Shown here in pieces: positions 5,878 to 59,100 of a stretch of 64,000 nt of DNA; the stretch's first letter is position 1, and every line of letters begins with the position of its first letter. The stretch is from the NCBI GenBank assembly GCA_964057225.1, contig OZ059898.1, positions 12,958,001 to 13,022,000 of the forward strand, in the 5' to 3' direction. The translations under genes were made by a program, and so were the position numbers. This DNA is from Auanema rhodensis. Taxonomy: Eukaryota > Animalia > Nematoda. A model generated the notes under the pieces. That model was not told the origin of the DNA, made no database searches, and was given only the letters and a program-made list of their open reading frames with translations.

Positions 5878-6128
5878 AAGAGAAGGAAGAGAATTGAACT
5901 GAGATGGTCATTCGAAGCTTTTTCTTTATTTCTTTTAGTTTTTAAATATTTTCTTTGTCGGAAGAAAAGATCAGAATAGTATCGTCTGTAAAACATATGA
6001 GATCAGAGAGTTAACTACTGTTTGCAAAAGATAAACGATGACTCATACGAGTTCAAAGAAAAAGACAAAACTATTATTTACAGTCTTCTTTGTTGCCTCA
6101 CTATTCCATTTTGTTCTCCCCTTCTCTT

Positions 6129-6179
<51 letters not shown>

Positions 6180-8376
6180 AGCTCTCTATCTCTCCCTCTC
6201 TCTCTCTCTACCTCGAAATCCTTTTCTTTCTCTCAATTCCTCATTTTTATACAAAAGTAGTTCATTGAACCAGAATTTAAGCGAAAAATATAAAGAGAGA
6301 AAAAAGGAGAGAGAAAAGGAGAGAGAGGGAGAGAGAGAGAGAGAGAGAGAGAAAAGAAAGAGAACGAGAGGTAAAAAAGATTTTGAGATAAGTATGAAAT
6401 GAAAAAGTTTGTCTAGAAAATGAACTTCAACACACATGTAATATCTAGTATAGTATATAATATTTCTCTTATAAAATCGAATCAATCTCTTTTTAAACTC
6501 TTGTAATCTCTCATAATTCTCTCTTAATTCAGCATTTTTTTAAATTTTGATTTCTCTTGTTCTTGCAACTTAACTAACTAACAAAATTCTTATACTTAAT
6601 TCGTTCATTGTTTTACTTTTCAGTTTTATAATGCTTTCAATCTTACCCTTTTAAACTTTTTTTAAATTGAAATATCATCAGAAATATGGTTTCCTCCTCA
6701 TCATACATATGTAGAACTACCTAGCTACTAACTGCAGCTTGCTTGCTTGCTCACTCGCATGAAGCTTTGTCTCCGCCCGCTTCACACATCGTCTAATCAG
6801 TTGAGTATCTAAGTGACATAGACAGACAGCACGAGAACACTCAGAGCATATCAGTACATCCAAAAATCACGTGTCATAGTATTGATAAATCAAAAAAAAA
6901 AACTTTATATTCAATCCTTATGAATGAGTTTCTAATTCTTCTTCCTATCCACTATTTTTAATCTTCTCACCTTTCAATTGCAGTCTCATATTATTGAATT
7001 TTGGTTGTTCCAGCGCTCATGTTCGGCTTCTGATATTCGAATCTCAAATTAGAAGAAATTCTCTTTTTCTTTTTCTCACAATCCATCTCTGTTTTCAATT
7101 CTTTTTTTTTTGGTTGCTGAGCAGTCTAGTTGCCTTCATGAAGCTTTTGTTCTTTCCTTCTTCACTCATATCTCAACGTAATTCGTTCAAAAAAACTTTT
7201 TTTTGCTACTAATATCGATTTTAATATAATCTTTTTGTTTATTTAGCTGAATATATATATATATATGTTATATATTTTATATTTTATTATATAACATATA
7301 TATATATACACATATATAATTCAAATTAATATAATTAATTCAATACAAGGCTTTTTTTTTAAATTATTTCACATAATATTTTCATATTTAAGCTTATTTA
7401 AGCTTATTTAAAAACCTCTTTTCTAGCATTTTCATTGAAACATCATCCTAAAGTACATTCTTCGCTCTACGGTACTCTAGACAAACAAATGAAATAGTGT
7501 GTTGAAGTGAATAATCGATCTGTTCCAATATTCTTATATTAACTTTATTCATTTAAGATAATTCTTATTTTAAGTTTATACAATTTTAAATTAAATTCAA
7601 TATATAGATTTATAGGTAATATACATGTGTCTTTAAAAGATATTATTAAAGAAAATCACTTTTTATTGTCTTCAAATCTTCTTGGTTTCTCTGTATCTCT
7701 CTCGCATTCCCTTTGAAACGTAGACATGGGCACGTACATAGGAACTGAGATATAGAAAGAGAGAGAGAGAATTATTTCCATTTCTCTCCCTCTATCTCTC
7801 TCACAACATTTCCTCTTATAATTTCTCTATCTATCTATCTGTCTATCTAACTCTCTCTCTCTATCTCTCTACCTCTCTCTCTATCTGTCTCCATCTTTTC
7901 ACTATGAACAGAAATTGATTAGATACCTTTGCGAAAGTTTCATCACCATGTTTATTACTTTTAGAAATTTGAATATTACCTATATTGAAGCAAAATAAAA
8001 TATAACTATTTCTATTTCTTATTTCATATAATTCTTATAAATGTTTTTATTATTATTATATTTCTTGGAACGATCTCTGCACAACATCGAAATAGAGGTA
8101 AAACTGGAAACTATATAGGCAGAGTGCGTGCCACCTACGATCGATCATCAACAATGCAACAACGTACGCACTACGAACTAATCGGTCTTTCCTTTTTGGC
8201 ATAGCCTCCTAAATGTACTATTTCATATAATATATATCATACATCAATATATGTTTTCTAATTACCTTTTGATCTAAAATTACCTTGTTTCTAATATGTA
8301 GATACATATAGATCTTTGCATTATATCTCCGTATCTTCTCTTCTCTCTTTTTTTATTTTTCTGTAACCTGTCTCTC

Positions 8377-16173: not shown

Positions 16174-17615
16174 CTGAAATCAGAAACCACAATATGCATT
16201 ATGATATACAATCGGCAAGAATTCCCATGGAATTTGAAAAAAAACGAATAATAAGGATCAAATTAGAAAAAATAGAAGAAGGACAGCACTGATTATACGG
16301 AATAATTATTAATTCAGACAAGAATTTAGTTTAGTTGGCAATGTGGGAGGCCTGATAGGGCGGGAGGTGACTATTGGTAAACCTGATGAAAGATGGGAAA
16401 TACACATACACACACGTAGATCATGTCCTCGTTGGCGTTGTCTCAATGATTGGTTTGTTCCAGATTCTGCTGTTACTGCTATTCTGAATAATGATCGTCT
16501 GAACTGTTTGACCAACGGAAATGATCTAACTTCAACAAGCAGAATCAGCAACAAGTTCTGGGTGTGTATGTATGTGTGTGTGTGTGTGTGTGTGTACGCG
16601 ATGGTCGTCTGAACGCCCAGGAGTGTCTCGCTGATGATGACGAAAACGACGACCCCATGATATACCGAAGATGCCGGAATAGAAGTGAACTTCGGCTTTT
16701 CACCGAAAGAGATTATCATTGCAAATTCTATTATTAGACTATCGAATTAGCAAATTTCCATCACAGCAAATGGAAGATTTCTTGTTTCAACGTCATATAA
16801 CTCTGATTTGTTTTGCTTCTAGATCTACTTATTTCAACAATCTCTGATCTGCTCTCCTCCCTTTTCATTGACAAAAACATTTTTTTATTTCCGTCTGATT
16901 TTTGTTGGGAATTCCTTTTGCAGACTATATACTGAGATAGAGAGAGATAGATAGAGAGAGAGAGAGATAGCGAGAGAGAAAGAGGGTGTGTGTGTGTGTG
17001 TGTTCTGTCAGCTTTATCTTTGATTGTAATCATGTATAGAGGGCAGTCTGTCTACTTTATCATAGAATATTCAATAGAAAAGAACACCATTCTTAACATT
17101 TTTTTGCCAAAGATTTATAGTAAATTCATATTTTAAGAAGATTCTCTTAGGCATTTTAGTTATGATGGGAGGGGGGGGTGGGTTGATAATGAAACGAATT
17201 ACCGTAATCAGTAGGAAGGAAAATTTGAAAATTTGAAAGGAAAAGATACGCTTCTGGGAATTCTATTCTTAGATTTCCGATTCATAAATATATATATGCG
17301 TCTGGTTCTTTTGAAATGCCTAAGAAGAAAAAAAGTTCTATTTTTGGTTAACAGGACTTTCACGTAAATGATTGAGATTCTGACAGTTCATTTGATGTAT
17401 AAATTACATAAAGGAGAAAGAAGCGGAGAAGGAGTAGAATAAGAAGGAAAAGGAAAAGTAGAAGATGAAGAAGACGATGGAGAAAGAGAAGAAGAAGAAG
17501 AACAAGGAGTAGACGATCCTTGAACCGTCAATGAATGAGACCGGAAGGGATGATTAGAAAGGAGTACAAGAGAATGGTCAGTTAAAATAAGAATGCACTG
17601 AATGTTTTGAATATA

Positions 17616-17621
<6 letters not shown>

Positions 17622-17668
<47 letters not shown>

Positions 17669-17973
17669 AGATAGGGAGATTAAGGGAGTAATGTGATTTC
17701 AGAATTTGTAAGAAATACATCAAAAAGACAGAGGTAGCAAAGGATAAGATGATAAACATTGTTGAATTAGAGACGACAAAAAGAAAACAAGTAAGCATTA
17801 CATGTGGATGAGAAAAAGAGAAAAGAAGATAAAGTATTTCCATTATAAATTATTATAACAATATAACTTTTTTTTGTTACAAAAGATCTTTATGTAAACC
17901 AATTTTTTTTGTTGCGAGATATATCTTCTTAGAAAAGCTGAGCATGTCTTGTCCTCTTCTTCTTTCAATCTTG

Positions 17974-18035
<62 letters not shown>

Positions 18036-18649
18036 CTTTCACTGTTTCATATTTAACCTTTCAACCCTTGTTCTTTCCGAACTTTTTTTTGTCTTTTGTA
18101 TCAAAATCTCAAAACGAAAAGTTAGGAACAAAGTTTCCGTTCAACCCCTTTCTTCTTTATGTCAGAAACTACAAAAGGAAAGATAAAATTGCAAAAGTTA
18201 ATGATTTTGCCATACAAGGTTTGACAATCTTCATTCATGTCATCAGCATCAGACCCCAATATAACCTGTTTTCATGTTGATAGTTTAGAGATCATATACA
18301 ACATACACGATATCAATTTTTTTTGAAAAAACATTAAATTTCACAAATGGATCTTGAGGATAAAGAAGAAGATAATTTATAATAATTTATTTAAAGAACA
18401 GAATGATATTTTCATCAAAGCATTTTACTTGTTTTTATTTTTCAAAAGAGGTGGGGGTTCCCCCATTTTTTAAAAATATTTTCAAGTCCTTCTAAATCGA
18501 AGAAAATTTTTTTGATGGTTAAATTCATCATTGAACTGATATATACAAGCTATTATGGTTCTAAAGAAAGAAAATTACAAGAAACAGAGAAATACTAAGA
18601 TTATAAGGAGATTGTGAGATAAAGAGAAAAAGAGGGATACATATGAAGA

Positions 18650-26267: not shown

Positions 26268-27980
26268 ATGTTAAAAACGGATTCAAAAGAAGAAGATGCG
26301 ATACGTTTACGTCGTACTGTCATCATAGCTGTAAGTTTGAAGTGAAAGTTGCAAACTTTTTTTAAACTTTAATATATTAATTTATTCTTGAAACTTGAAC
26401 TCTTTACAGACTATTATATCAACTTTTGCTGTTTTCTCATCAATTATAACACTTCCATTAATATATACTTACTTACAAGCTTTGCAAACTCATATGGCTG
26501 AAGAGATGACATATTGCAGAGTAAGTTTGATACTAAAGTTTCAAAATTGTAGCATTTTAAATAGTTTACTGAATTATTAATTTCAAAAAAAATCTGCTCT
26601 GAAACTAACTTGAAACATAAAAAAACTTTTTTGCTGAGCAACATGTTCATTCAATTTAAATCTTGTCAGGCACAAACTAGGGATATGTGGATTGAAGTGT
26701 TTGCTGTAGAAGATAGTTTACGAGAAAATTCAAGAAATCTCTCTAAACGATCAACGTCACAGAATCCTGATGCTTCAGCTGCTAGAGTTAGACGTGAATG
26801 GTCCTTTGGTCAATGGATAGATAATAGAGTTGGAAACCCAGCCGACAACGTTGAGTCAATCGATCCTAAGACAGATAATGTGCAAAGGAAAATAAGTTAG
26901 AAATACAAAATGTTTGGTTGCTATAAATAAATCTTCAGACTATAAACGATTCGGAAGAGATGACACCGGTGCTTACCCAGACTATGGTGCCAAAACAGCT
27001 GCAATTGAGGATTTCGAACCAGCTTGTTTGAAATAATTTATCCTTTCCTTTTATTTATAGTATACATGTTAGGTTGTTCGTGTCAACAAGGTCCACCAGG
27101 TCCACCTGGACCTCCTGGAGATGAAGGGATGCCTGGTTTTGATGGCAAAGCAGGAATTGATGGACCGAATGGGCGCGATGGCCAGGTGAGATTAGTTCAA
27201 AAAGCATATCTTATGATGCAAGTAGATATATTTATCAGCCATTTCATGTTTTTTCAGCTTTTGCCGCCTTTGAATAATCCACCAGAACCATGTGTTATCT
27301 GCCCTCCCGGAGCCCCAGGAGCACCTGGAGCTATGGGACCGAAAGGACCGCCAGGGCCTAGGGGAACTCCAGGAATTCCAGGGCAGGTATGAAATCCTAT
27401 CCGATCCGACAATTGAATTTGACTATTGAGAATTTATTTTAAGTTGTTGAGCGTAAGAGAGCGGTTGTATTCTCAAAATAATTCAGTAACAAAGATTTAA
27501 TTGATTTTAAAATATTCCAGGATGGAAAGAAAGGAGAACCAGGAATGGCTGGACCTCCAGGACCAACTGGTCGTCCTGGTAGGGTTGGACCCAAAGGATC
27601 TAAAGGAGAAGATGGCCGCGTGATCATTGTCAGTTCAATACGTGTCGTTTATGTCCAGTTAATCTCAAAATTATGTATTCAGGTTGCTGGGCCGCCTGGA
27701 CCACCAGGAATTCCTGGAATACCAGGACCACCAGGAGTGAAGGGATTGAAAGGACCAGACGGAAAGCCTGGAAAACAGGGACCAGTAGGCTTACCAGGAG
27801 GTAAGTTCTCATTAAGCTGACCCCATCAACCATTAAAAACAACATTCTTTTTTAGACCCAGGACTACCAGGTCTCGATGGACGTGAAGGAGTTCGCGGTG
27901 AACGAGGCCCTGTTGGATTGCCTGGACAAGGAGGTACGTGCGATCATTGTCCGCCACCTAGACTACCTCCGGGATATTAA
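26268..27980 (+). CDS. Nematode cuticle collagen (Col_cuticle_N domain plus interrupted Gly-X-Y)
   Basis: N-terminal TM segment [23 protein letters not shown] followed by YCRAQTRDMW; RVRR subtilisin/furin site; [13 protein letters not shown]; [10 protein letters not shown]; C-terminus [14 protein letters not shown] (TAA 27978-27980). Confidence 0.96.
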
Positions 27981-28249: not shown

Positions 28250-29239
28250 TTAGTAAGATGTGACAGGGCGGACTTCCATCCATTGCTTCAAAAGAGGAAT
28301 AGAAGTGACTTTCTTGAAGTGAGCCTTGACCTGAAAGCCAGAGAAATGAATTATCCATAGAAGATGAAGCATATTTCAATCAAATAAATTAAATTTTCTC
28401 AAATTTCATACCTCTGGGTAAGCATCAGCGTACTCAGGAATCAACCCAGTGAGAGTAAAGATGTGCTCAGCGAGAATGAGATCAGCAAAAGTGAGTTCAC
28501 CACCAGCCAAGAAACCTGAAATGATTTCATAAAGCAGGAAATAAGCAAAACAAACGTACCAGTTGTACTTTTCTTGAGATAGTTGGTCATGAAACGAAGA
28601 TATTTGTCACGAGCTGGTAACAAAACCTCATTCTTCGCTTGCTCCTGAAAAGAAAGGGTTGAACTTGCTCAAGATTTATGTTTTTTTTATGGAATTTGAC
28701 GAAACTGAGTTCTCGAGTATATATTAGAAATTCTCACCAATTCTTCTGGAGTATGGGGGAAAATTCCAACAGCTTTGTAATAGTAAGGCTTGATCTCAGT
28801 GTAGAAATCTTTGTATTGATCAGCGAGAGCATCAACGATAGCTTGCTCGTAAGAGCTCTTGCCATAGAAGCCTTAAGTTCATAGTTAACAGCCTAATTCA
28901 AGTTTCTGAAAACTTACCGTATTGTTTGGCGAGGTAACGAACAATAGCAAGAGATTGTGGAATCACTTGTCCGTCAACTTCAAGAATTGGCATTTGCTCG
29001 AATGGAAGAGCTGGAAGTAAACGCATGAAGTGATAAACTTTTATATCCAATACTTACTAGGTTTAACATTTTGCCACTGTTCAATAGGAACACGCTTATC
29101 TTCAAAGGGAATTTCAGCTAAGTGGAAAATCTATAACACATAACGCTCAAAATAATAATGAGAAACTGTAAAATGTTACCTGGCGAGCAATCTCACCAAA
29201 TCCACGTCCAGGGAAGTAAGTAAGCTTGTAGTTGACCAT
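28250..29239 (-). CDS. Glutathione S-transferase, sigma/nematode class, copy A
   Basis: MVNYKLTYFPGRGFGEIARQ|IFHLAEIPFEDKR...|LPFEQMPILEVDGQVIPQSLAIVRYLAKQY|GFYGKSSYEQAIVDALADQYKDF...GFLAGGELTFADL...LKQWMEVRPVTSY*; catalytic Tyr present. Confidence 0.96.
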
Positions 29240-31235: not shown

Positions 31236-32223
31236 TTAAAAATTGGTAACTGGGCGAGTCTCGATCCATTGCTTCAAAAGAGGAATAGAAGTGACTTTCT
31301 TGAAGTGAGCCTTGACCTGAAAGCCAGAGAAATGAATTATCCATAGAAGATGAAGCATATTTCAATCAAATAAATTAAATTTTCTCAAATTTCATACCTC
31401 TGGGTAAGCATCAGCGTACTCAGGAATGAACCCAGTGAGAGTAAAGATGTGCTCAGCGAGAATGAGATCAGCAAAAGTGAGTTCACCACCAGCCAAGAAA
31501 CCTGAAAAGTTTGAATGAGTGATTACAGAAAGATGATTTTCTATTACCGCTTGAACTTTTCTTGAGATAGTTGGTCATGTAACGAAGATATTTTTCACGA
31601 GCTGGGAACAAAATTTCATTCTTCGCTTGCTCCTGAAACAACAACGATGAACCAAGTATTAACAAAATGAAAATTGAATTAATTTAACATTTGAATGAAG
31701 TCATACCAATTCTTCTGGAGTATGGGGGAACACTCCAATTGCCTTGTAGTAATACTGCTTGATCTCAACGTAGAAATCCTTGTATTGATCAGCGAGAGCA
31801 TCAACAATAGCTTGCTCGTAAGGGCATTTTCCATAGTAGCCTTCAAGTAGTTAGGTTCAAGTTCACGCCAAAGATAAGGTAACATTTCTGAAAACTTACC
31901 GTATTGTTTGGCGAGGTAACGAACAATAGCAAGAGATTGTGGGATCACTTGTCCGTCAATTTCAAGAATTGGCATTTGCTCGAATGGAAGAGCTGAAAGT
32001 AAACGCATGAAGTGATAAGCTCTAATATCCCAAGCTCACTATTCTTAATGGATGCCCATTTGTCCATAGGAACACGGTTATCCTCGAATGGAACCTCAGC
32101 AAGATGGAAGATCTGGAAAAATTAGAAGATGAATGACTACGCTACATGAACGTCTGAAGATACCTGGCGAGCAATCTCACCAAGACCACGTCCAGGGAAG
32201 TAAGTAAGCTTGTAGTTGACCAT
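31236..32223 (-). CDS. Glutathione S-transferase, sigma/nematode class, copy B (tandem paralogue)
   Basis: Same exon structure as copy A: MVNYKLTYFPGRGLGEIARQ|IFHLAEVPFEDNRVPMDKWASIKN...LPFEQMPILEIDGQVIPQSLAIVRYLAKQY...WIETRPVTNF*. Confidence 0.96.
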
Positions 32224-33524
32224 TGCTATTTGAGAACTTGTATGAACCTATAACATATGCGATGCGTTGCTCTATATATACTCAGTAGGTTCATTGAATA
32301 AAAACCAGTTCTTGAACAGAATATTCTCGTTCTATCTGTGCTGCTTTGTTCTTGCATAACTTGCACACAAACTCAGTGAAATCATGGTGGAAATAAATAG
32401 AAAATTATGGTGAAATGATGGAAAAATGATGACAAATAAAAGAGACAAAGTTACATTCATTCAAAAAAATTGACATGGCGAAGAGACATCTCAAGAGAGA
32501 TAGAGAAAGAAAGACGATTGGCCAGCGCGAATAATAACTGCCTAGGAGAGTCGGGCATGGCTGTCTCTGCTTGCCTGTGGTCTACAGCACTTGGGCGTTG
32601 TGGTAGCCCTATACTACCTCAACATCTTTTGTTCCTGCTTTTCCCTCTCATTCTATACTACACATCAGTATTTTTCCCCAATGAACCTTGAACAATGTAT
32701 TTGGCTCCGCCTTTAGTACTATCACTTAGTTCTTTTTCTTAATATAGTTTGTAATTGTCCAACAACTGTGCAAAGAAGTGCAGAAGTGAGAGTAACAACA
32801 ATCATATTCATACTAGACTCAAAGAACATCCGTGATAAAACATCGGGTGATGATAATACAAAAACAGTCGATCAAATGGTTCAGCATAGGGCTAGTTAGA
32901 GACATAGAGACCAATGAATTCGATCTAGGCAATAGCTATGCAATTGTCCGATTCATTTTCGGCCTTGTGTACAATTATTTTTGAAAAAGAGAGGCACATC
33001 AATTCATGTGGTAACGGGATGATGTTTTTCCGTTTTTCAATCCTTTTGAAGGTCAAAAAACAAAAAGAGAGAGAGAGAGAAATAGAACACCAGATTGAGT
33101 CAGAAATGACGTGGTAACGCTCTTGAACCTCTTGCCGTTTTTTCATAAAATATTGAGAATTAAGGGGGTAAAATGTTGTTACAACTACTTTTTCAAAAAA
33201 GATTTGAAAATAAATAATATGCGTACAACAAAAATTGAAAGATTTATCACCGTTTATAATACAGAATTCAAACATCAGAGACCTACAATCACATAAAGTT
33301 ATAGTTGAACTCTGTAACAATACGAAGAGAAAGAACTAAGAAGGGAAATAGAAGAAGAAGAAGAAGAAGAAGAAGAAGGAAAAGAAGAAGAAGACGAACA
33401 AATCGAAGTGATAAGAGGAAATGATTTAGAATAATTGAATATTTTCTTCAAATTTTGAAATAAAAAAGATATTTTTAGAATATTGATAGAATGAATATTC
33501 ATTTCATATGTAATCCAATGTATT

Positions 33525-33526
<2 letters not shown>

Positions 33527-33572
<46 letters not shown>
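33527..33572. repeat. (TA)n microsatellite
   Basis: Perfect TA run of about 23 units. Confidence 0.9.
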
Positions 33573-33576
<4 letters not shown>

Positions 33577-33791
33577 CTATAATTCATCAGTGGTTCCTTA
33601 TTATGATTATCGCTGTAGTTCTTAGTATGTATTTTTAAATTTGTTATTGTGATTAGATTCATATGTGTATTTGCCAAAAGTTGAACTTTAAAGAATAAAA
33701 AAAATGAATTTAATAGTTCTAGAGGATAATTTACTACAACAATCACTTTGACATCAAAGAAACATAAAAATTAAAATACAATAACCCGAAT

Positions 33792-34752: not shown

Positions 34753-35797
34753 TCAAATAAAAAAAACAACAAGAAACAATAACAAATTCAAGCTCATGCT
34801 TATATTTGCTGAATTCAATTGACATCCAGGTAATAAAGCTTCCGTCGGTCTCACAATCAGCTCACGAATAAGCTGCCAAGCTCTGTAACCACATTCGTAT
34901 CGTACTGGATGTCGTACACAATCGACGTAGTTTCTCATGGCTCTGAAATTAATAGAAAAGGTCTTGGTTGATTTTAGAAAAATTATGCTCACCCGCATGC
35001 TGCAGCATTTCGCGTGCTGATGTCACTTTTTTGCGGAACTTTACGAGTATCAGCAACCATTTCAGCTTGACATTGCATCATTTCAGCTCTTGTTAAAGTT
35101 TTCGTGAAACAGTCAAAGTTTCTCATCAATTCTTAACAATTGTTTGAATGAGAAAGAAAAAATTAAACGAACAAACCTCCATAACCATCTCGACATATAA
35201 AATCAAGAACTTTCAAAGCTGCATCGTATCGGAATCTAGCTTTGGAACTATCAAAGCATACATCTTTGTATGGCTCTATACATAAGTCAAAGATGAAGAA
35301 ATTACTGAAATAAGGTTTAATGCTGATTTTCAATATCTTACTTACTCGCAAACATCACTGAAATATTCTCGAGTCTTGCTCATAAAATGTTGCCACGATA
35401 AGCTTCCACCATCTTCAGCTAAGGCTCCCACTTTGTACAAAGGATCAGCACATTGTCTAACCCTTTCTTGTTCTTTTGGTCCACATTCTCTTGAAATCCT
35501 TTCATCTGCAGATTGCATGACAAGTCCATGAGGAGGAGAACCTATAACAGCTGTGAACGGCACAGTTAAGTTTTTATCCTGGAAGAATATCATGATACTT
35601 GAAGGTTAAGCTGATAAACTTACACCAAGTTGAACGTAATTCATAGGACCAGGTGATTGAATATAGGGGATAAAAATCTGAGATTGTTGTGCGAGTTGAT
35701 TCAAAGGTTGTTGATAATGAAAATCGTCATAGAGACTTTGAGCTTGAGTTGCAAAACATAATAAAGCTGTCAAAAAGGAAAAAGTGACTGTACACAT
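34753..35797 (-). CDS. Secreted, probably GPI-anchored Cys-rich protein (DUF19/CPG4-like domain)
   Basis: Signal peptide MCTVTFSFLTALLCFATQA. Cys spacing ECG...QCADPL...DVC|...LCIEPYKDVC...LDFICRD...FDC...QCQ...AC|AMRNYVDCVRHPVRYECG...LPGC. Hydrophobic C-terminal tail NSANISMSLNLLLFLVVFFI*. Confidence 0.85.
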
Positions 35798-36353
35798 TGA
35801 GCTAGTGGAATATGCTTAAGTAAGCTTTTGAAATTAGCTAGTTGCTGATTTCTGAAGTTTTCACTAATGGTATCTAAGAAGCTGGACTAAACAGCTAAAT
35901 GCCCAAAGACTGAAATCAGGTAAGAGCGATTGAGAGATTTGGATAAGTGGATGACGAAGAAGGAGGGTCCCATAAGCAAGAAGATTGGTTCTAGCTTATG
36001 TTTGCTTATTATGACACATGTCATTCGGCTTCCGCGTATGGTCAACCTATTAACGCCAAACTCAATCAGACACGAAGAACTATATAGTTTCTCTTTTCTG
36101 CTCGGTTTGTATATGGAGTAGTAGCATATAATCATTGGTTATCTAATTGGTTAGAGAAGAAGACTAGCGGGAGAGATTAGGAGGGAAATGAGAAGATACA
36201 ACGAAGCAAGGTAACCAAGATGATAGAAGCTATTCTTTCCTTTCATATACACACACATAGAGTCAACGAACTGTCTATTTAAACGATTTATAACGATGAT
36301 GACAATCTTCTGAATCTGCGATATGACGTATGTTTGTCTCAATACTAAATCCT

Positions 36354-36761
36354 TCATAATATATTTGAAATCTCCAATATTACATCACCAGCATTCACTT
36401 TGTCGCCAACATTTTTGTGAATTGACCGGATATATCCACAGTTATCCTATAATTAATTAATAATATTTTTGATGTTTATTGAATAGAAGACGCCAACCAA
36501 TATATCATGAGTTACATCAACTTTCATGGTGTTTATCACAAACCCTGGTTGGGATTTTGTCACTTGCTGATCCGGTTTTACCTAAAATAAACTTACATAT
36601 TCCAAAAATTACATCAATACTTACAAGAATTTCGGTTAGAATTCCTGAATTCATAGCTATTACCTTACGAATTTTCTGAAATACGATCTTGGTTTAAAGC
36701 CTCTTTATACATGTAATACCTCATTTTCACTTAATTTATTTGTCAAATCAGCTCCAGTCAT
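36354..36761 (-). CDS. Stand-alone biotinyl/lipoyl-attachment domain microprotein (89 aa, BCCP-like)
   Basis: Four exons (36761-36720, 36675-36625, 36581-36498, 36446-36354) joined by three phase-0 GT-AG introns of 43-51 nt give MTGADLTNKLSENE|KIRKVIAMNSGILTEIL|VKPDQQVTKSQPGFVINTMKVDVTHDIL|DNCGYIRSIHKNVGDKVNAGDVILEISNIL*. By eye this follows the biotinyl-domain pattern (V.APMPG.V..I.VK.GD.V..GQ...EAMKM...G.I..I...GD.V..GD.L.EI). Confidence 0.85.
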
Positions 36762-37180
36762 CTTCCTGGTTCGGTGTTGACTAGAATTTTGAGGATGAAA
36801 ACGAGACTGGGTAGGTCAAACTAAGATTTCCCGCTATTAGTACAAGATAAAGAAAATTAATTGCCAATTGTCAAACAGACTATATGTAATAGTATCAAAA
36901 CAAATTTATTGTCAATTTGAAAACTTTCACAACAATGGGTAAAATGAGAGCATATATCATAGTCACGGGAAACAGCTATAACGTTCAAAAATCATCCAGG
37001 GTATAGCTCAAGGCTTATGATATTTTGCAAATTTTTAAAGCTCCTGATCGAAACGTAACTCTGAATGGAGATGCTAAACTTGGGATGAGACTTAAGCATT
37101 ATGGCCGTAGAAAGTAATTTTCTGTATTACTTAAGATTGATAATCAGCTTCAGTAACAATAATAAACAGGATTAGTATAT

Positions 37181-39616
37181 TCATAGAGTCTCTCTACGAT
37201 ATGGATGTACATCATATGTAAGGAACTGTTCAGGATGCTTCACCAACACGTGCATGTATAAAGAAGGTAAGTGGTAAAAGTTATGCATACACTGAAATAA
37301 AAATAATTAAAGAAAAGAAATAAAAATAGTATTACAATTTTGCAATATTCTCTTAACCCGTGGAAATCATAATGAAGATCAAATAAGTTTGCCGTAGAAA
37401 ATGTGAGACCACAACGTTCGCAATCCAAACCATTTTTGTATCTAAGAAAGTCATGTACTTATAACTTGAATAGAAATCTTACTGATTTTCTTGACGGAAA
37501 CCGTCTTCAATCAAAACACGCAGCTCAGCTTCTGTACATAACGGCTCATAGAAAAACTTCAATCTTTCAAATGATTCCATTGCATAAACGTGAGCAAGTA
37601 AAGGTATACAACATTCTTAAATTTAATGATTAGAAGAGAGAAAAAAAAATTCTCTACCATATTTAGTGATCAAACAATGGACAGATTCCATAAATTTGGG
37701 ATTTACATCGGCACCAACCAACTGGGTAAAAGTTCTGAAGAATTCGCCTTGTCTCATATATGAACTCCATCCATGTACAAGAATAAACTAAAATAGATGT
37801 GGGTTTCCCAGACTAGAAAAATAGGGAAACTCACGAATCTAGCTTTGGTCATATCACCCCAGGCGAATTTAGTTCTGGTAGCTTCAGCCATTCTAATATA
37901 ACTTTGAGACATGACAAACTTAATAAGTTTAGTAATATAAAACCACTGATCCTAAAAATAAATAAATAAATAAAAAATGAAAAGAAATAAGAGAGCAACC
38001 CTGAAATTCTTCCATTCTTCAGTAGTAATTTCAGGATCATTTGAAGTAACGTGTCGTTGAAGAATTCCAAATAAATCATTAAATGTCTTTTCAGCTTCTT
38101 CCATCTGTTCTCTGATTTTAGAACTTGTAATAATTTGTTTCTTTGGTGAGAGCAATTTTGGCTCTTTTGTCTTAGGATCGATGATATACTGATTGTTCAA
38201 AATAATAGTAGCTTCGCTAGATAGTCTAGTAGTCATTGTTCTGACCACTTCACTTGGATCAAACTCTTAAATAATTTTCATGCCTTATAAAGTAAAAACA
38301 TAACACAAATTTAACCAACCATCTTTAAATATAATAGCTCCATATCCACGGAATGCACTAATAACTTCGTGAACTCGCTGTGGTATTGGCAAAGTATGGC
38401 ACACAAAATCAGGTAAAGGATCTAAGTAAATAAGGTAAACAACTCAGAGTAAAAAGCCTACCATATGCATTTACAGGGGCCTTCAAAAGAACGTGTTCAA
38501 GTAAAGTACCAAACATTTCGGCATCGCTCTTATTCTTAGCTGGGAAGAATGGATTGAGCTCTGAAATCGTCGATGTCGTCGATATCACATATTTATATAT
38601 ACCTTGTGGTAAAAGGGATGTAATATCAAACTTATGAAAAAAAGGAGGCATCGGTACATTTACTAAAACATCATAGTTATGATTTAACAGTTATTCGAAC
38701 GACTTACACATGCACAGAGTTGAACAGAGTGGTAATGGAGCTTCGTCAAGAATCATGCTTAAACTCGGTTCATTATTTTTAAAGCATTAAACATTTTTAC
38801 GATAGTCTGCCTCCGTTTCGCACAATTCCAGATCTCCTGAAGTCTTCATCAGTCAAGTCCTCCTCCGTCAGATATTCAACAGCAAAGTTGGGAAGGTCGG
38901 TAATAATCGGCTCGAGTAAGAATGTTCGAATAGCTTCGGTCTCCAACTCTTTATAAACATGTTCAGGAATTGTTCCACGCCTGAAATATTTAACAATTAA
39001 GGTTGGACTATATATTTCATACATGGGATGGGGTGGTCGGAAAATTGCAGGAGCTTCGTTGACAGCCATCTGCGAGGAACCAGCTTGATCTGTTCTATTG
39101 CTGCAATTATTAAAATATCACAATTTCATAGGACTGTCTACCTTGCTGCTCGATTAGGTGTCCCCCTAGAGCGACCACCTCCACGAGAAGATCCTCTTCC
39201 ACCTCTTCCTCTAGAAGGTGCTCGTCCTGCACTTCCTCTTGAACTACCTACTCCAGCATTAGAACCACGCGGTCTGCCTCTCGGAGTCGATGGCTGATGT
39301 TTCCCAGGACTTGATTGCCCTTTAGTCGCACCACTTCTTTTTTTAGCAGCTATATTTGCTCGTACGGACTATAAAGAAAATAATTTTCAAATTAGGAAAG
39401 CGAGCATACATCTGTTCGCCCAGCTTTTTGAGGTTCATATGAATCATCACTTGTTCTATCTGATTGGGGACTGTCCGACTCCCTTGGGTCAACTTGCATC
39501 CTACAATTATTCAACACATTATCTACAGGAAATGAAAAAAACATTTCTGGCTCAGTTTCCATCTCAACATCCGGTTGTTCGTATTCGTCAGCACTGCCAG
39601 CTGAAGTACTCGCCAT
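37181..39616 (-). CDS. Putative chromatin/DNA-binding protein: acidic N-terminus, AT-hook, RGG tract, unrecognised central domain and two C-terminal C2H2 zinc fingers
   Basis: About 14 exons join in frame: MASTSAGSADEYEQ...; STPRGRPRGS (AT-hook); RGRGGRGSSRGGGRSRG; C-terminal CERCGLTFSTANLFDLHYDFH and CKI|CMHNFYHLPSLYMHVLVKH; stop TGA at 37183-37181. Confidence 0.85.
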
Positions 39617-40515
39617 AACAAAAACTCAAATTCTGTAATTAGTAATTAACATGAAACAGGCTTTTCCGATACTATGCAATGATACAAGAAAAAAATAAAA
39701 TCTATCAAGCCATAGCAGAATATGCTTTATGCTTCAAAAAAAGAAGAATAACAAAAAACTCATTAACAGATATCAATTAAACGCATTGAAAATAACAGAA
39801 AGACAAAAAAAAACAATTAAAATATGGATGCGTTTCTTGGACCGTAACTACAAAACTTTGTATCCACGCCTTTAAACTTATTGATTGTGAAATATTTCTC
39901 GAGTTCACTAAAATACAACCCTTTACTTTAGAACTTAATAAGTTTGATATAATTTATACGCAACCAGACTTCAAATTTATAAATTTGCAATTGTTAGATA
40001 GATTATTTTATGAAAAAAAGTAAAAGTGTGAACCTTCAGTTGATATATCTCGAAATCTACTACAAGTTCAACTTATAATAGCTTGGAAGCTTTGTCTTCC
40101 CAGAAAACAGATAAAAGGGTAACTGAAACCTGAACGCTTATAAAAATAAAAATGAAGTAATTTAACTTACAAATTCAAAAAAAAATAGGAATAGAGTATG
40201 CGTACATTATATGCATAATAAAGCAAAACAACTGATCAGTATTTGGGTTCTGTGAGGTGTTCCAATATGGCGGAAACTCCTATAACTCGTTTTTTTATAT
40301 AAATATAGTAACATAAACCTACAACATTTTTCTTCTCAAAAAATTGTAAAAATAATTCAGTTACAATAAATTCTTCGAAGAAAAAGGTATATGTTAATGT
40401 ATGTTCTAGTTTAGATATTTGTACCTGTAATTTTGGTTAAAAATTTAAATTATAAGAAATTGGTAACGTACATCAGATCATTTTCAATTTAACAACTTAT
40501 CGAAGATTATATTAG

Positions 40516-42009
40516 TCAAGAGGAATAAGGAAATTTTATTCTTCTACGTCCTCTCCCTGAAATTGAGAAAGGTATAGAAGATTATTAGATCAAAAAAGAA
40601 TTATATCAGCACAGTGTATACAACCGCATCACAGTTATTAAGATTGTTAAATAAGGTCCACATAAGTAAATAAGTATAATTTATCACTAACATTTTCAAT
40701 ACCATCAAAGCATTTTCGCAAATAAAGATCCCAATCTGGCTCACGCCAGCATGGCTCGTTTTCAGCAATGTTGAAGGTAACTTTTTCAGACATCTCAATT
40801 AAATTATTAATTACTATTCATACCATATTACTTACCCCAATATTCATATTAAGAGGATGGACGATATATGTCAGACATTCAGGTTTATTGGCAGGCATAG
40901 GTAAAGGGTACATCCTTCTTGGGTCAATTTCATACATGCTCTCGTCTCTTTTCATCGCCTCTTTCCACTCGTATAAAAAAATATAGTCTAGCGCATGTCT
41001 TCGATCTTGTCCAATACCATCAACATGCAGTGGCAACAAATCTCCGATTTTATACCTGGCACTCATTCTAGGTTCATATTGTTTTATAGCAAGAGCCTGG
41101 GCCAAAGCTTTTTTAGTTTTGAAATCTGGAATTTTTTTTCTAACTGCTTTTGAAGTCTCTGCGTGTAGAAAATTGTTTTCAACATTGTCTTCATCCTTGT
41201 TAACTTCGTCTTCATCCTTTTCAACTTTGTCCTTATCTTCTTTAACCTTGTTCTTATCATTTTTCACTTCGTCCTCATCGTTCGTCATTTGGGCTTCATC
41301 ATTTTTCACGTCCACCTCCCTTTCTTCTACTTCGGCTTCATCATTTTTCACTTCCTCCTCCGTTTCTTCCACTTCGTCTTCGGTATAGTTCTCACTTTCT
41401 GAATCGTTATCTTGTGACTCATTTTCTTCTTCTATATATTCATCGCCGCTATCATCGATATCGTTGTCATCTTCACTATGAATATTTTCCGAATAGCTAT
41501 CTTCAGTATCGTAATTTGGTCGCATTTCATGGTCCCTATTGCGATAACTTCGCAGCCTTGCATTCCTCGATCTAGTAGATATACTTCTTGCAGTTTGGTT
41601 AGAGTTTCTTGTATTTCTAGAACTTCTAGATTCTCTACCTCGAATTGAAGCAGTACTTTGTCTATTAATTCTATTAAGATAGTTATAAAAGCTATCTGAA
41701 GAAATAGATGTTTCCCCACCAGGAGCAAGAACACTTCTATTTGTCGGCCTCAAGAATACATATTAATTTCATATCGGAATTAATTTGTACCTTACTCCTC
41801 TACCACGACCACTTGTGAACTGAATGCCTGGATTATCACCAGGTAACGTATAAATTTCTATTTAGAAGAAGATTAATGTTAATAACATAATTAACAATAC
41901 CGGTGTTGTTAAGGTACGAAAACCTTGAAATTGTTTCAAACGTTGCAGGAGTTATGAAAGGATTAGCGGTATAACTTGAAAGATTTGAAGGCGGTTTTCT
42001 TCGAGACAT
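40516..42009 (-). CDS. Orphan protein with Arg/Ser-rich region, long acidic tract with 7-aa repeats and a C-terminal globular region
   Basis: tttcag-GAATT-ATG at 42009 (MSRRKPPSNLSSYTANPFITP). Large exon 41750-~40835 includes EVKNDE-type heptads; then MSEKVTFNIAENEPCWREPDWDLYLRKCFD and a predicted last exon GRGRRRIKFPYSS*. The 3' end is less certain. Confidence 0.75.
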
Positions 42010-56198: not shown

Positions 56199-59100
56199 TT
56201 ATAAATAGATATATGTTCTCTGATCCTTCTCATCTCTAGCCATATACTCGCGTTCAATTAGAGCTTCAATACGCTTTTTGATCAGGGCTGGTGATGAGTG
56301 GAAGCGATGCTTCAATTGATCAATTACCTATAAACAAACTTATTGACAACGTATAATTGATATGTGCAAACCTCAGTAACAAGATTGTTATGGACGCACT
56401 TTTTCCTAGCCTTCATGATACGAACGATCGCAGCTTCAACTTCCAACTTACGATCTTCTTCAATCTAAATAAAATGCTTAATTATAAGAGGCAACGATGA
56501 ATACAAACCTTATTTCGTGTTTCTTTTCGCTCTGGTTCGGTTTCTCCCTTCGAAGTTACTAGTTGTATTTTTATTCTGGTTAATTTAGAAGTAAAACTGT
56601 CGTTAACAAAGAATTCATCTTTTGGTTCTGCAACAAAAATGCTTTAAAAAAAAAGTTAATCATCGAACTAACCGATTTCCTTCCCAACTCCCTTTCTGCA
56701 TAAAACTCTCTGGGTCGTTTTACCCATAGCAAGAGATTGTAAGTTCCGTTTTAGATCCTTCTCAGGTATATGAGTATCAGCCTACGATATAACAATATAA
56801 CTAATGTGCTTCAGCATAATATCTCACCAAAATTTCAGCAAATGTCAATTTTTCTTTTTTGTTGAATAATAATAAAATAACCATTTGATATGTATTGTTT
56901 GTTTGTAAAATCTTAATCTCTTCCTTTCTAACAACGGCAGAACTTGACGCACCGTCTTCCTGAAAAAAAAAAGAAAGAAAAAATGGTCTTTGTTCTAAGG
57001 AAAAAAATACGAACCTGTTGACTGAGATCGTCTCTATTGGCAGATCCTCCATAGAAAGTAGCCTTAATATCAGCACAACCAAGAGCAGTGTTCAATGTAA
57101 TCTTGCGGCCATTATGTTTGGATGTGTAGAACTCTTGGAAAGTCTTGAAACGAAATAATATTATAGAAGATAAATTTTTCTTTACTTGGAAACTAGTAGT
57201 ACAAAGTTGAGGCAAATAGCACTGAGTTGGGACTTGGGTAGGCCAAACACCCGCAGTAAGTACACGGACAGTAATGTCAACAGGATCTTTTTCGCGAATC
57301 TGAAAGAAAGAAAACTTGTAAAAAGTACAACCATGAATTGTATACAGTTTGCACGTCAAATCGTTCACGATATGAGCGGAAATCAGCAGCATTTGTACCC
57401 CAAAGTTCCTTATCGCGGAACATTCCTTCTAATTTTTGTGTAAATTGGCACCCACATTCAGTCTATAATTATTTGAAACTCCGGAAAGAGACAAGCTTAA
57501 ATAAACCTTTAACTTTGTTATCATAGCATTCTCAGCTTCATCAGATATACTCTTATCGAGCAGCAGCCTTCTCGCCAAATGTTGTTTATAATACCTTAAG
57601 ATCATAGAATAAAAAAAGATAATTGGAAAAAGAATACTTTTCAAATGCATCCTTTTCTTGTAAAAATCGGAATAGCACCATTGACTTGTCAAGAAGTTGT
57701 TCAAGTTCACTGTCGTTCAACTAGAAAAGCCATTTACTTATTCCAAATGAAGCACTGTAAACTTACATCTTTACTTCCCTTTCTTAGCTTATCATCCATA
57801 TACAATGACAAAAACTCAGCACTTTTCGTTGTCTAAAAATAGACAGCATAATAATACTCAAAGAAATCAAGAGAAAAAACATACTTTGTTAAAGAAGCTT
57901 TCAAAATCATTTTGAATTTTATGTTTAAAAACTTTATCATTACCAAAAGCCATAAGCAAGAAATAGTCGAACTTCTCCTTCAAGTTGATTAATGCCTAAA
58001 AAGAAAAGAAACTATACATAAATCCAATAGATATACCTGAATGAAATTAACGGGATTTCTAATTAATTCACCATCTTCAGCAACGATATCTTCACCGAGT
58101 TGACGAAGATGCCTTAAAGGCTTACATTAGCAAAGTAAAAAAGCAAAAATATTACTTGCTCATAGCAGCAGTGATTACACTGAGTCCATTTTGTACTCGT
58201 TTCAGGAGGCGATATAACCGGTTCAAATCTTCAACCTAATATAAACATAAAATTCATAAGAAGAAAATTGGAAGAGGAAACATGCCTTGTCGTTAGACAA
58301 CATAGCTACCACACCACTATTTTCCATTTCTACAATTGTTCTCATGTGCTCTGTGATTAATTCTCTATCCAAAACCTGAAAATATTAAAAGCATATGAGA
58401 CACTAAACAGCATTAAACGAACATCTAAAATCTTCGTCTCAGTAGAAGGATCTAAGCAACGCTTAGCCCTAGCAGTTTCTGCTTCGATGCATTCTTCAAC
58501 CTAAAATCCAACACTTTAAATTTGTTTTTGTCACACACTAATCACCTTCTTAACATAAACACTGGCACTGTTTTCGCTCAAAAATTTTTGGCTGGCCTTA
58601 CGATAATATTCGGCCGATTCCTGGAATCAATTTTAATTTTACAACTTGAATATTACCAAAAACTAACATTAAGGAATGGAGTTTCAAAATCAGTCTCATA
58701 AACTTTTCGATTTTCAACACCTAAGGCTACCAACATTTGGCAGGCATTCTTGATGCCCATCCTTGAAAATGACAAATATAAATTATAAAAAAGTACAGTT
58801 TTCACATACCAGTTATCAGAGTTTCCCTTTCTTTGTTCTGCAATTAGCTGAAGTAAAGTTTTGCGAAGATGCTCGCTAACATTATTCTGACGGACAACTT
58901 CGTCTCTGTAACAATAATAGTAAAATAATTAATAAAATAAATTTACCTGAAAATTGACAACCCCAAATGATACACGGGTTCAACATTGTGTTGTTGTACA
59001 TAGACGCGATCCATATACATAAGGATATCCCGAATCATAACCTGATAATATCAAAGTGATAAATCAGGAAATCAATAAAGAATTTACCATAGCAGTAGTA

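Follow-up and report, generated by a model that had tools for sequence, protein, structure and literature searches.

A free-standing biotinyl-type miniprotein encoded by tiny exons in the nematode Auanema rhodensis

Free-standing biotinyl domains are a feature of bacteria and archaea (AccB, BLAP) and of plastids (BCCP), and plants have, in addition, lysine-less regulators of the same kind (BADC). In animals, the biotinyl domain is to our knowledge known only as the tethered part of four large carboxylases. For C. elegans, only four carboxylases are reported as endogenous biotin proteins (PMC9437848). The locus described here lies on the minus strand of a 64-kb window (the whole stretch of 64,000 nt of A. 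rhodensis DNA that was analysed) and encodes a miniprotein of 89 residues, in which a known domain with a non-canonical hairpin is found in an architecture and a lineage where it is undescribed.

Read from the sequence, the miniprotein gene runs from 36761 to 36354 on the minus strand, and its four exons join into 270 nt, namely 89 codons and a TGA stop. Exon 1 has a coding part of 42 nt (36761-36720, residues 1-14), bounded by an RNA joint, and encodes a disordered acidic/basic tail (pLDDT ~51). Exon 2 (51 nt, 36675-36625, residues 15-31) holds strands 1 and 2 and an A-M-N-S-G motif, as placed by sequence, alignment and model, and exon 3 (84 nt, 36581-36498, residues 32-59) holds the hairpin N-T-M-K-V with Lys51, placed by the same three sources together with RNA depth. 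Exon 4 (93 nt, 36446-36354, residues 60-89) includes the TGA at 36356-36354 and is covered by contig pieces spanning 36276-36445. The introns of 44, 43 and 51 nt (36676-36719, 36582-36624 and 36447-36497, respectively) are all GT..AG and all in phase 0; the third has a weak donor, GTTGGC, and the acceptor TTATAG. The start ATG at 36761 is located 19 nt past the AG of TTCTAG, a 3' splice acceptor at 36786-36781 and putative trans-splice site before exon 1, which leaves a 5' UTR of 19 nt (36762-36780), while the 3' UTR comprises 78 nt (36276-36353) and carries the gene's own poly(A) signal, TATAAA, at 36292-36287. The sequence between 36900 and 36762, that is, back to the poly(A) site of the neighbouring gene, contains no ATG, and a colinear RNA that retained the outron would hold an in-frame TGA at 36818-36816, so that the start codon holds up however the 5' end of the mRNA is formed. 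The longest plain ORF in the area has only 45 aa and runs through an intron, hence the gene is invisible to a list of ORFs. The original prediction had proposed just such a hidden gene, with four tiny exons joined in frame into 89 codons, canonical splice sites in three introns, its own ATG 19 nt past ttctag and its own stop, and each of these features was recovered when the coordinates were reproduced from the sequence and compared with the RNA joints.

The miniprotein gene is expressed and correctly spliced, and its mRNA of ~367 nt is separate from that of its neighbour. The RNA data consist of assembled contigs from four runs (X1-X4) of one study, which bear the label 'RNA?' and are taken to be RNA because the contigs lack introns; contigs of this type cannot show a true 5' end or a spliced leader, and rare isoforms are dropped from them. 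A separate spliced contig of the miniprotein was present with 365 nt in X1 and 367 nt in X2, matching the length of the predicted mRNA (19 + 270 + 78 = 367 nt). It spans 36276-36445 in both runs and then passes through the joints 36581/36625 and 36675/36720. The joints for introns 1 and 2 are present in all four runs, the one for intron 2 being recorded as 36577/36621 'cut +4', which equals 36581/36625. Use of intron 3 can be seen from a loose end at 36497 in X4, the 19 letters of which are the start of exon 4, and from the bin 36455-36585, the depth of which corresponds to 81 covered nt, as opposed to the 66 that a form with a short exon 3 would give. A second possible donor of intron 3, GTAACT, lies 18 nt upstream of GTTGGC and keeps the frame, leading to 83 aa; this isoform was rejected, since the RNA contigs use GTTGGC. 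The k-mer depth of the miniprotein contig is 69-96 in X1-X3 and 4 in X4, and the contigs end at 36276, 11 nt past TATAAA. At the other end, bin depths place the beginning of the X1 and X2 contigs ~5 nt inside the TTCTAG acceptor, whereas the X3 contig extends ~31 nt beyond the acceptor into colinear genomic sequence, which is consistent with some unprocessed outron. In the assembled RNA contigs, spliced-leader letters were not seen at the acceptor, and no Rfam family was detected in the window, hence it holds no SL RNA gene.

The upstream zinc-finger gene is represented by a separate contig of ~2.1 kb with a different k-mer depth, and its contigs stop at 36892-36948, beside an AATAAA at 36910-36905 and ~110 nt before the TTCTAG acceptor. 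RNA contigs and sequence thus delimit a spacer of operon-like length (36787-36904) between this AATAAA and the acceptor. Since a spliced contig of mRNA length exists that is not joined to the upstream gene, the miniprotein gene is a stand-alone gene in an operon-like position and not the tail of a carboxylase; the RNA junctions, for which the original prediction had asked, show introns 1-3 in use in a transcript of its own, not in the 3' end of a longer protein. From the spacing of ~110 nt we infer trans-splicing at TTCTAG and membership in an operon. That the exons form instead the 3' end of a carboxylase, or of a fusion to the upstream zinc-finger gene by way of 36781, is extremely improbable. 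No stop interrupts the frame between the acceptor and the ATG, so that a cis-spliced upstream exon could extend it, and a rare isoform of this type would drop out of the assembled contigs; against this, the contig, with 365-367 nt, has the length of the predicted monocistronic mRNA, the upstream contigs end next to their AATAAA, and a joint into the acceptor at 36781 is absent from the assembled contigs of all four runs. A colinear RNA would, moreover, meet the in-frame TGA mentioned above, and the window contains neither carboxylase-like exons nor biotin-carboxylase or carboxyltransferase partner genes, nor any paralogue or repeat of the miniprotein locus.

The upstream neighbour itself (37181-39616, minus strand) has ~16 exons and encodes a protein with two C-terminal C2H2 zinc fingers; its RNA contig has at least 13 joints. 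Its introns of 40-54 nt are all confirmed by RNA joints, the last one (44 nt, 37292-37335) splits the second zinc finger, and the stop is located at 37183-37181. The N-terminal part has an acidic N-terminus, an AT-hook-like GRPRGS motif and an RGG-rich stretch, and no Pfam match was obtained with its single-exon pieces. Introns of 40-54 nt, together with acceptors of the TTTCAG type, are in keeping with a rhabditid nematode. The contigs of this gene from three of the runs stop near an ACAG acceptor at 39633, while the X3 contig, of 3712 nt, goes on beyond 39634 in the 5' direction for another 255 letters, which do not resemble the window; this extension may be a further 5' exon outside the compared stretch, an alternative leader or part of a chimeric contig. 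On the downstream side, a gene of five exons (34753-36054, minus strand) encodes a cysteine-rich secreted protein of ~295 aa without a Pfam family, with a signal peptide from an ATG at 35797 and a hydrophobic C-terminal tail. Its RNA contigs, of low depth, reach 36054, which leaves only ~220 nt to the poly(A) site of the miniprotein gene, and because of this proximity it could be the third gene of the same cluster. Further away, a stop-free exon of 314 codons (40821-41762, minus strand) encodes a Ser/Arg-rich and then Asp/Glu-rich sequence with a better-ordered C-terminal part, and its 311-aa ORF gave no Pfam family and no homologue in a word-indexed search. Two tandem sigma-class GST-like genes are found at 28600-28900 and 31400-32225 (minus strand), the second with an ATG at 32222 and short introns, and a cuticle-collagen gene with Gly-Pro-Pro repeats at 27009-27820 (plus strand). 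A cullin-family exon (56931-57428, minus strand; Pfam Cullin, E 3.7e-14) is the sole neighbour with a recognisable conserved family. Microsatellites of the types (TC)n, (CA)n and (TA)n at 6000-6540, 16300-18300 and 33500-33750 give rise to spurious SLSLSL, THTHTH and YIYIYI ORFs.

The 89-aa product consists of a disordered tail (residues 1-14) and one divergent biotinyl-type barrel-sandwich domain (~15-87), as the original prediction of essentially one biotinyl/lipoyl domain had it. The profile comparison it had proposed, against Pfam Biotin_lipoyl (PF00364), yields 37.1 bits, above the curated cut-off of 22.1, with E 2.9e-9, and aligns residues 23-85 with positions 13-73 of the 73 in the profile; no second domain was detected by Pfam in the 89 aa. 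This E-value, together with the spliced transcript, excludes a chance match. Among NCBIfam models, small BCCP subunits (PRK08225, PRK06549) and pyruvate carboxylase rank first, with scores that are all far under the curated equivalog cut-offs (34 vs 95 bits). Among PDB sequences, the best match is B. subtilis BLAP 1z6h (72 residues, E 4.7e-8, 36 bits), followed by E. coli E2p lipoyl domains and the human PCCA biotinyl domain; for the human PCCA and PC domains, the sequence comparison gives E 1.5e-4 to 7e-3. An AlphaFold2 model guided by a 20-row alignment of library matches (A1, comprising biotinyl and lipoyl domains) has eight strands in a barrel-sandwich arrangement (pLDDT 88, pTM 0.73), compared with a pLDDT of 32 for the model from the single sequence. 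Residues 1-14, which include three acidic residues, are of low confidence in the model, and Lys51 is positioned in a turn of four residues (T-M-K-V) that links strands 43-48 and 53-57. In Foldseek, the top solved structures are BCCP domains (target-normalised TM 0.83-0.94), with a Pyrococcus BCCP first and PC, PCC and MCC following; BLAP is also listed, and the human PCCA and PC domains reach a query-normalised TM of ~0.71-0.73 at an rmsd of ~1 A. Because biotinyl and lipoyl domains made up the guiding alignment, agreement in fold is partly built in, and the model is thus compatible with the barrel-sandwich fold and not independent proof of it.

No protein of this kind is on record in the searched collections, in line with the original suggestion that it may be undescribed. 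A word-indexed homologue search with the 89-aa protein gave no candidate, and the exact 89-aa sequence is not on record among the encoding contigs. Exhaustive phmmer against 1.84 billion representative proteins returned 16 weak matches at E <= 1e-3 (best 2.3e-8), all with an identity of at most 40%, among which there was no orthologue; these are generic bacterial-type and mostly multi-domain biotinyl/lipoyl proteins, including tandem lipoyl/biotinyl proteins, an E2 and an oxaloacetate-decarboxylase-like protein. The one match of a metagenome scan is a bacterial HlyD-type efflux adaptor with the common peptide NVGDKVNA and is irrelevant. The miniprotein is therefore unannotated and has no detectable orthologue in the searched collections, which does not show that it is absent from other nematodes, because genes with tiny exons are easily missed by gene finders. 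Recent horizontal transfer was rejected as a source, given the three spliceosomal introns, a host-like G+C of the gene (~33-34%) and the lack of a close bacterial homologue. Likewise, with at most 40% identity to anything in the 1.84 billion proteins, the miniprotein has diverged too far to have been copied recently from a conserved carboxylase domain.

The same searches bear on the reading that this is a drifting, lineage-specific gene with no selected function, a biotinyl fragment, captured behind the zinc-finger gene, that would owe its transcription and processing solely to its operon-like position. In favour of this reading are the lack of an orthologue or close homologue in any searched collection, the degenerate state of key residues, and the neighbours, which are also fast-evolving and without a Pfam family. 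It is nevertheless decidedly unlikely, since the divergence just described is too great for a young copy of a conserved carboxylase, the k-mer depth is substantial in three of the four runs, and the frame is intact, as are all three pairs of splice sites, the poly(A) signal, the hydrophobic pattern and the glycines that determine the fold (G25, G63, G73 and G79). A stop-free frame of 89 codons would, by an estimate from the base composition, arise by chance in about 1 in a thousand cases. The retention of an intact frame, six splice sites, poly(A) signal, glycines and hydrophobic pattern despite the divergence is indirect evidence that suggests selection on the gene.

The acceptor lysine is residue 51, encoded by the AAA codon at 36524-36522, and stands in the motif N-T-M-K-V, as originally predicted. 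In alignment A1, it is aligned with the modified lysine of both EAMKM and ETDKA domains, and this position in the alignment and the model mark it as the predicted acceptor of a prosthetic group. EAMKM is present in all nine biotinyl rows of A1; of the nine lipoyl rows, eight show E-(T/S)-D-K-A and one shows EGEKA. Relative to EAMKM, the hairpin of the miniprotein retains Met at -1, but position +1 is occupied by Val, -2 by Thr and -3 by Asn; two near-invariant residues are changed, with Asp in place of the turn residue Gly35 and Asn in place of Glu48 (-3), and one residue is inserted after the hairpin. The A-M-N-S-G of exon 2 is aligned to the A-P-M-P-G of biotinyl domains. With class HMMs built separately from the biotinyl and the lipoyl rows of A1, the whole domain scores 48.0 bits as biotinyl and 45.5 bits as lipoyl, whereas with the hairpin masked the scores are 37.5 and 39.7 bits, respectively, from which it appears that the domain body does not discriminate between the two classes. 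For this reason, the biotin call rests on weaker points, namely Met50-Lys51, the A-M-N-S-G motif and the ranking of BCCP and carboxylase proteins in NCBIfam and Foldseek. The original call of a biotinyl rather than a lipoyl domain is thus weaker than it was put: it is favoured by Met50-Lys51, but finds no backing in the masked domain body, and the near-invariant Glu(-3) and Gly35 are replaced.

Animal lipoylation takes place in mitochondria. A lipoyl or octanoyl carrier, in which Lys51 would take octanoate or lipoate within a GcvH- or BLAP-like lipoyl relay, could draw on the domain body, which scores as well with lipoyl as with biotinyl profiles, on several best library matches being ETDKA lipoyl domains, and on the deposition of the best PDB sequence match as 'Biotin/Lipoyl Attachment Protein'. 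It is nonetheless very improbable, as the hairpin is not of the lipoyl type (Asp-Lys-Ala or similar, with Glu at -3): the miniprotein has Met in place of Asp at -1, and Asn at -3. In addition, no GCV_H profile matched the 89-aa protein at E <= 1 in Pfam, we read no mitochondrial-type presequence in it, and the top structural matches are BCCP domains. The identity of the residues matters, given that those around the lysine steer the ligases (PMC2753649). A BCCP with MKM swapped for DKA is partially lipoylated, yeast Pyc1 is biotinylated less well once the residue preceding its biotinylation site has been mutated, and human PDH requires Glu at -3 for its lipoylation, which a change to Gln blocks (PMC2753649). 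Met at -1 and Asn at -3 would accordingly lean towards biotin and away from lipoate.

The explanation that we tentatively prefer, and which we regard as possible, is a cytosolic acceptor domain, the Lys51 of which is loaded by the worm's biotin protein ligase, and which acts as a soluble sink or regulator of biotin or ligase. The mRNA would be produced by trans-splicing at TTCTAG, which follows the poly(A) site of the zinc-finger gene at an operon-like distance of ~110 nt. The translated miniprotein would then remain in the cytosol, because residues 1-14 appear to contain no signal peptide and their acidic character is unlike a typical mitochondrial presequence. BPL-1/holocarboxylase synthetase may attach biotin to Lys51, a modification predicted from Met at -1 and from the preserved geometry of the hairpin. 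As a soluble acceptor of biotin, the miniprotein could then buffer biotin and ligase or compete for them. We know of no multi-subunit carboxylase in animals that requires a free carrier, and its most likely role would thus be that of a sink or regulator, as opposed to a catalytic carboxyl carrier. Roles of this kind, namely a biotin sink or store, a decoy for holocarboxylase synthetase or a trans-acting carboxylase regulator, had been put forward as possibilities in the original prediction. Points against the biotin reading include Val at +1, Asn-Thr at -3/-2, the change of Gly35 to Asp, the hairpin-masked scores and the lack of an orthologue in the searched collections.

In another reading, the domain is folded but no longer a substrate of the ligase, and an unmodified decoy or binder would dock on the BC/CT sites of carboxylases or on BPL-1 in the manner of BADC. 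This is suggested by the replacement of two near-invariant residues, Glu48 and Gly35, and of the Met at +1, and by a Pfam score of only 37 bits, compared with 63-64 bits for the single-domain matches P0008 and P0015. BADC also provides the precedent of a BCCP-like regulator (10.1101/634550). The reading is nevertheless unlikely: a BADC protein has a BCCP-like fold without the biotinyl lysine, whereas here Lys51 is aligned with the modified lysine and the preceding Met is retained, and the carboxylases' own tethered BCCP would out-compete a free domain in animals.

In its strongest form, the preferred reading of a BPL-1-loaded, cytosolic acceptor would make the miniprotein the first animal example of a free-standing protein with a biotinylated carrier domain, which would set the supply of biotin or ligase to the four carboxylases or be carboxylated in trans; this form is doubtful. 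If true, worms would possess a BCCP/BADC-like layer of carboxylase control, which would have stayed hidden from gene finders because of exons of 42-93 nt. More generally, a separate biotinyl-type miniprotein would represent a fifth potential biotin acceptor beside the four carboxylases. It might serve as a biotin buffer or regulate the ligase and the carboxylases, and streptavidin-based proteomics would show additional background from it. The case also illustrates that annotation based on ORFs and homology misses genes with exons this small (42-93 nt). How much the finding weighs hinges on whether Lys51 is modified and whether the gene is conserved beyond A. rhodensis.

Among the closest known systems is B. 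subtilis BLAP (YngHB, 1z6h), which is likewise free-standing, with ~70-90 residues, one barrel-sandwich domain and an acceptor Lys after Met; correspondingly, the miniprotein is a free-standing single-domain polypeptide, with an 89-aa ORF on its own ~367 nt mRNA. The two share 33% identity in the Foldseek structural alignment and a sequence match of 36 bits, and in the library search a mix of unrelated biotinyl/lipoyl proteins scores about like BLAP. In contrast to the miniprotein, BLAP is bacterial and has a canonical S-M-K-M hairpin with Glu at -3, while the miniprotein has N-T-M-K-V, an insertion of one residue, three spliceosomal introns and an extra tail of 14 residues. The BCCP domains of animal carboxylases (pyruvate, propionyl-CoA, methylcrotonyl-CoA and acetyl-CoA) have the fold and the lysine position in common with the miniprotein, but they are always tethered to catalytic domains and have the hairpin (E/S/I)-(A/V)-M-K-M, whereas no catalytic domain is found with the miniprotein, on its transcript or in the window. 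Free AccB/BCCP subunits of bacterial, archaeal and plastid origin resemble it in that the biotinyl domain is on a separate polypeptide, yet the miniprotein is without their N-terminal oligomerisation region and their Pro/Ala linker, and we know of no genes for partner biotin-carboxylase or carboxyltransferase subunits in animals. Plant BADC, finally, are small BCCP-fold proteins with degenerate hairpin residues, for which a regulatory and not a catalytic role has been proposed, and they differ from the miniprotein in that they are without the biotinyl lysine and are not biotinylated (10.1101/634550), whereas the miniprotein retains Met-Lys.
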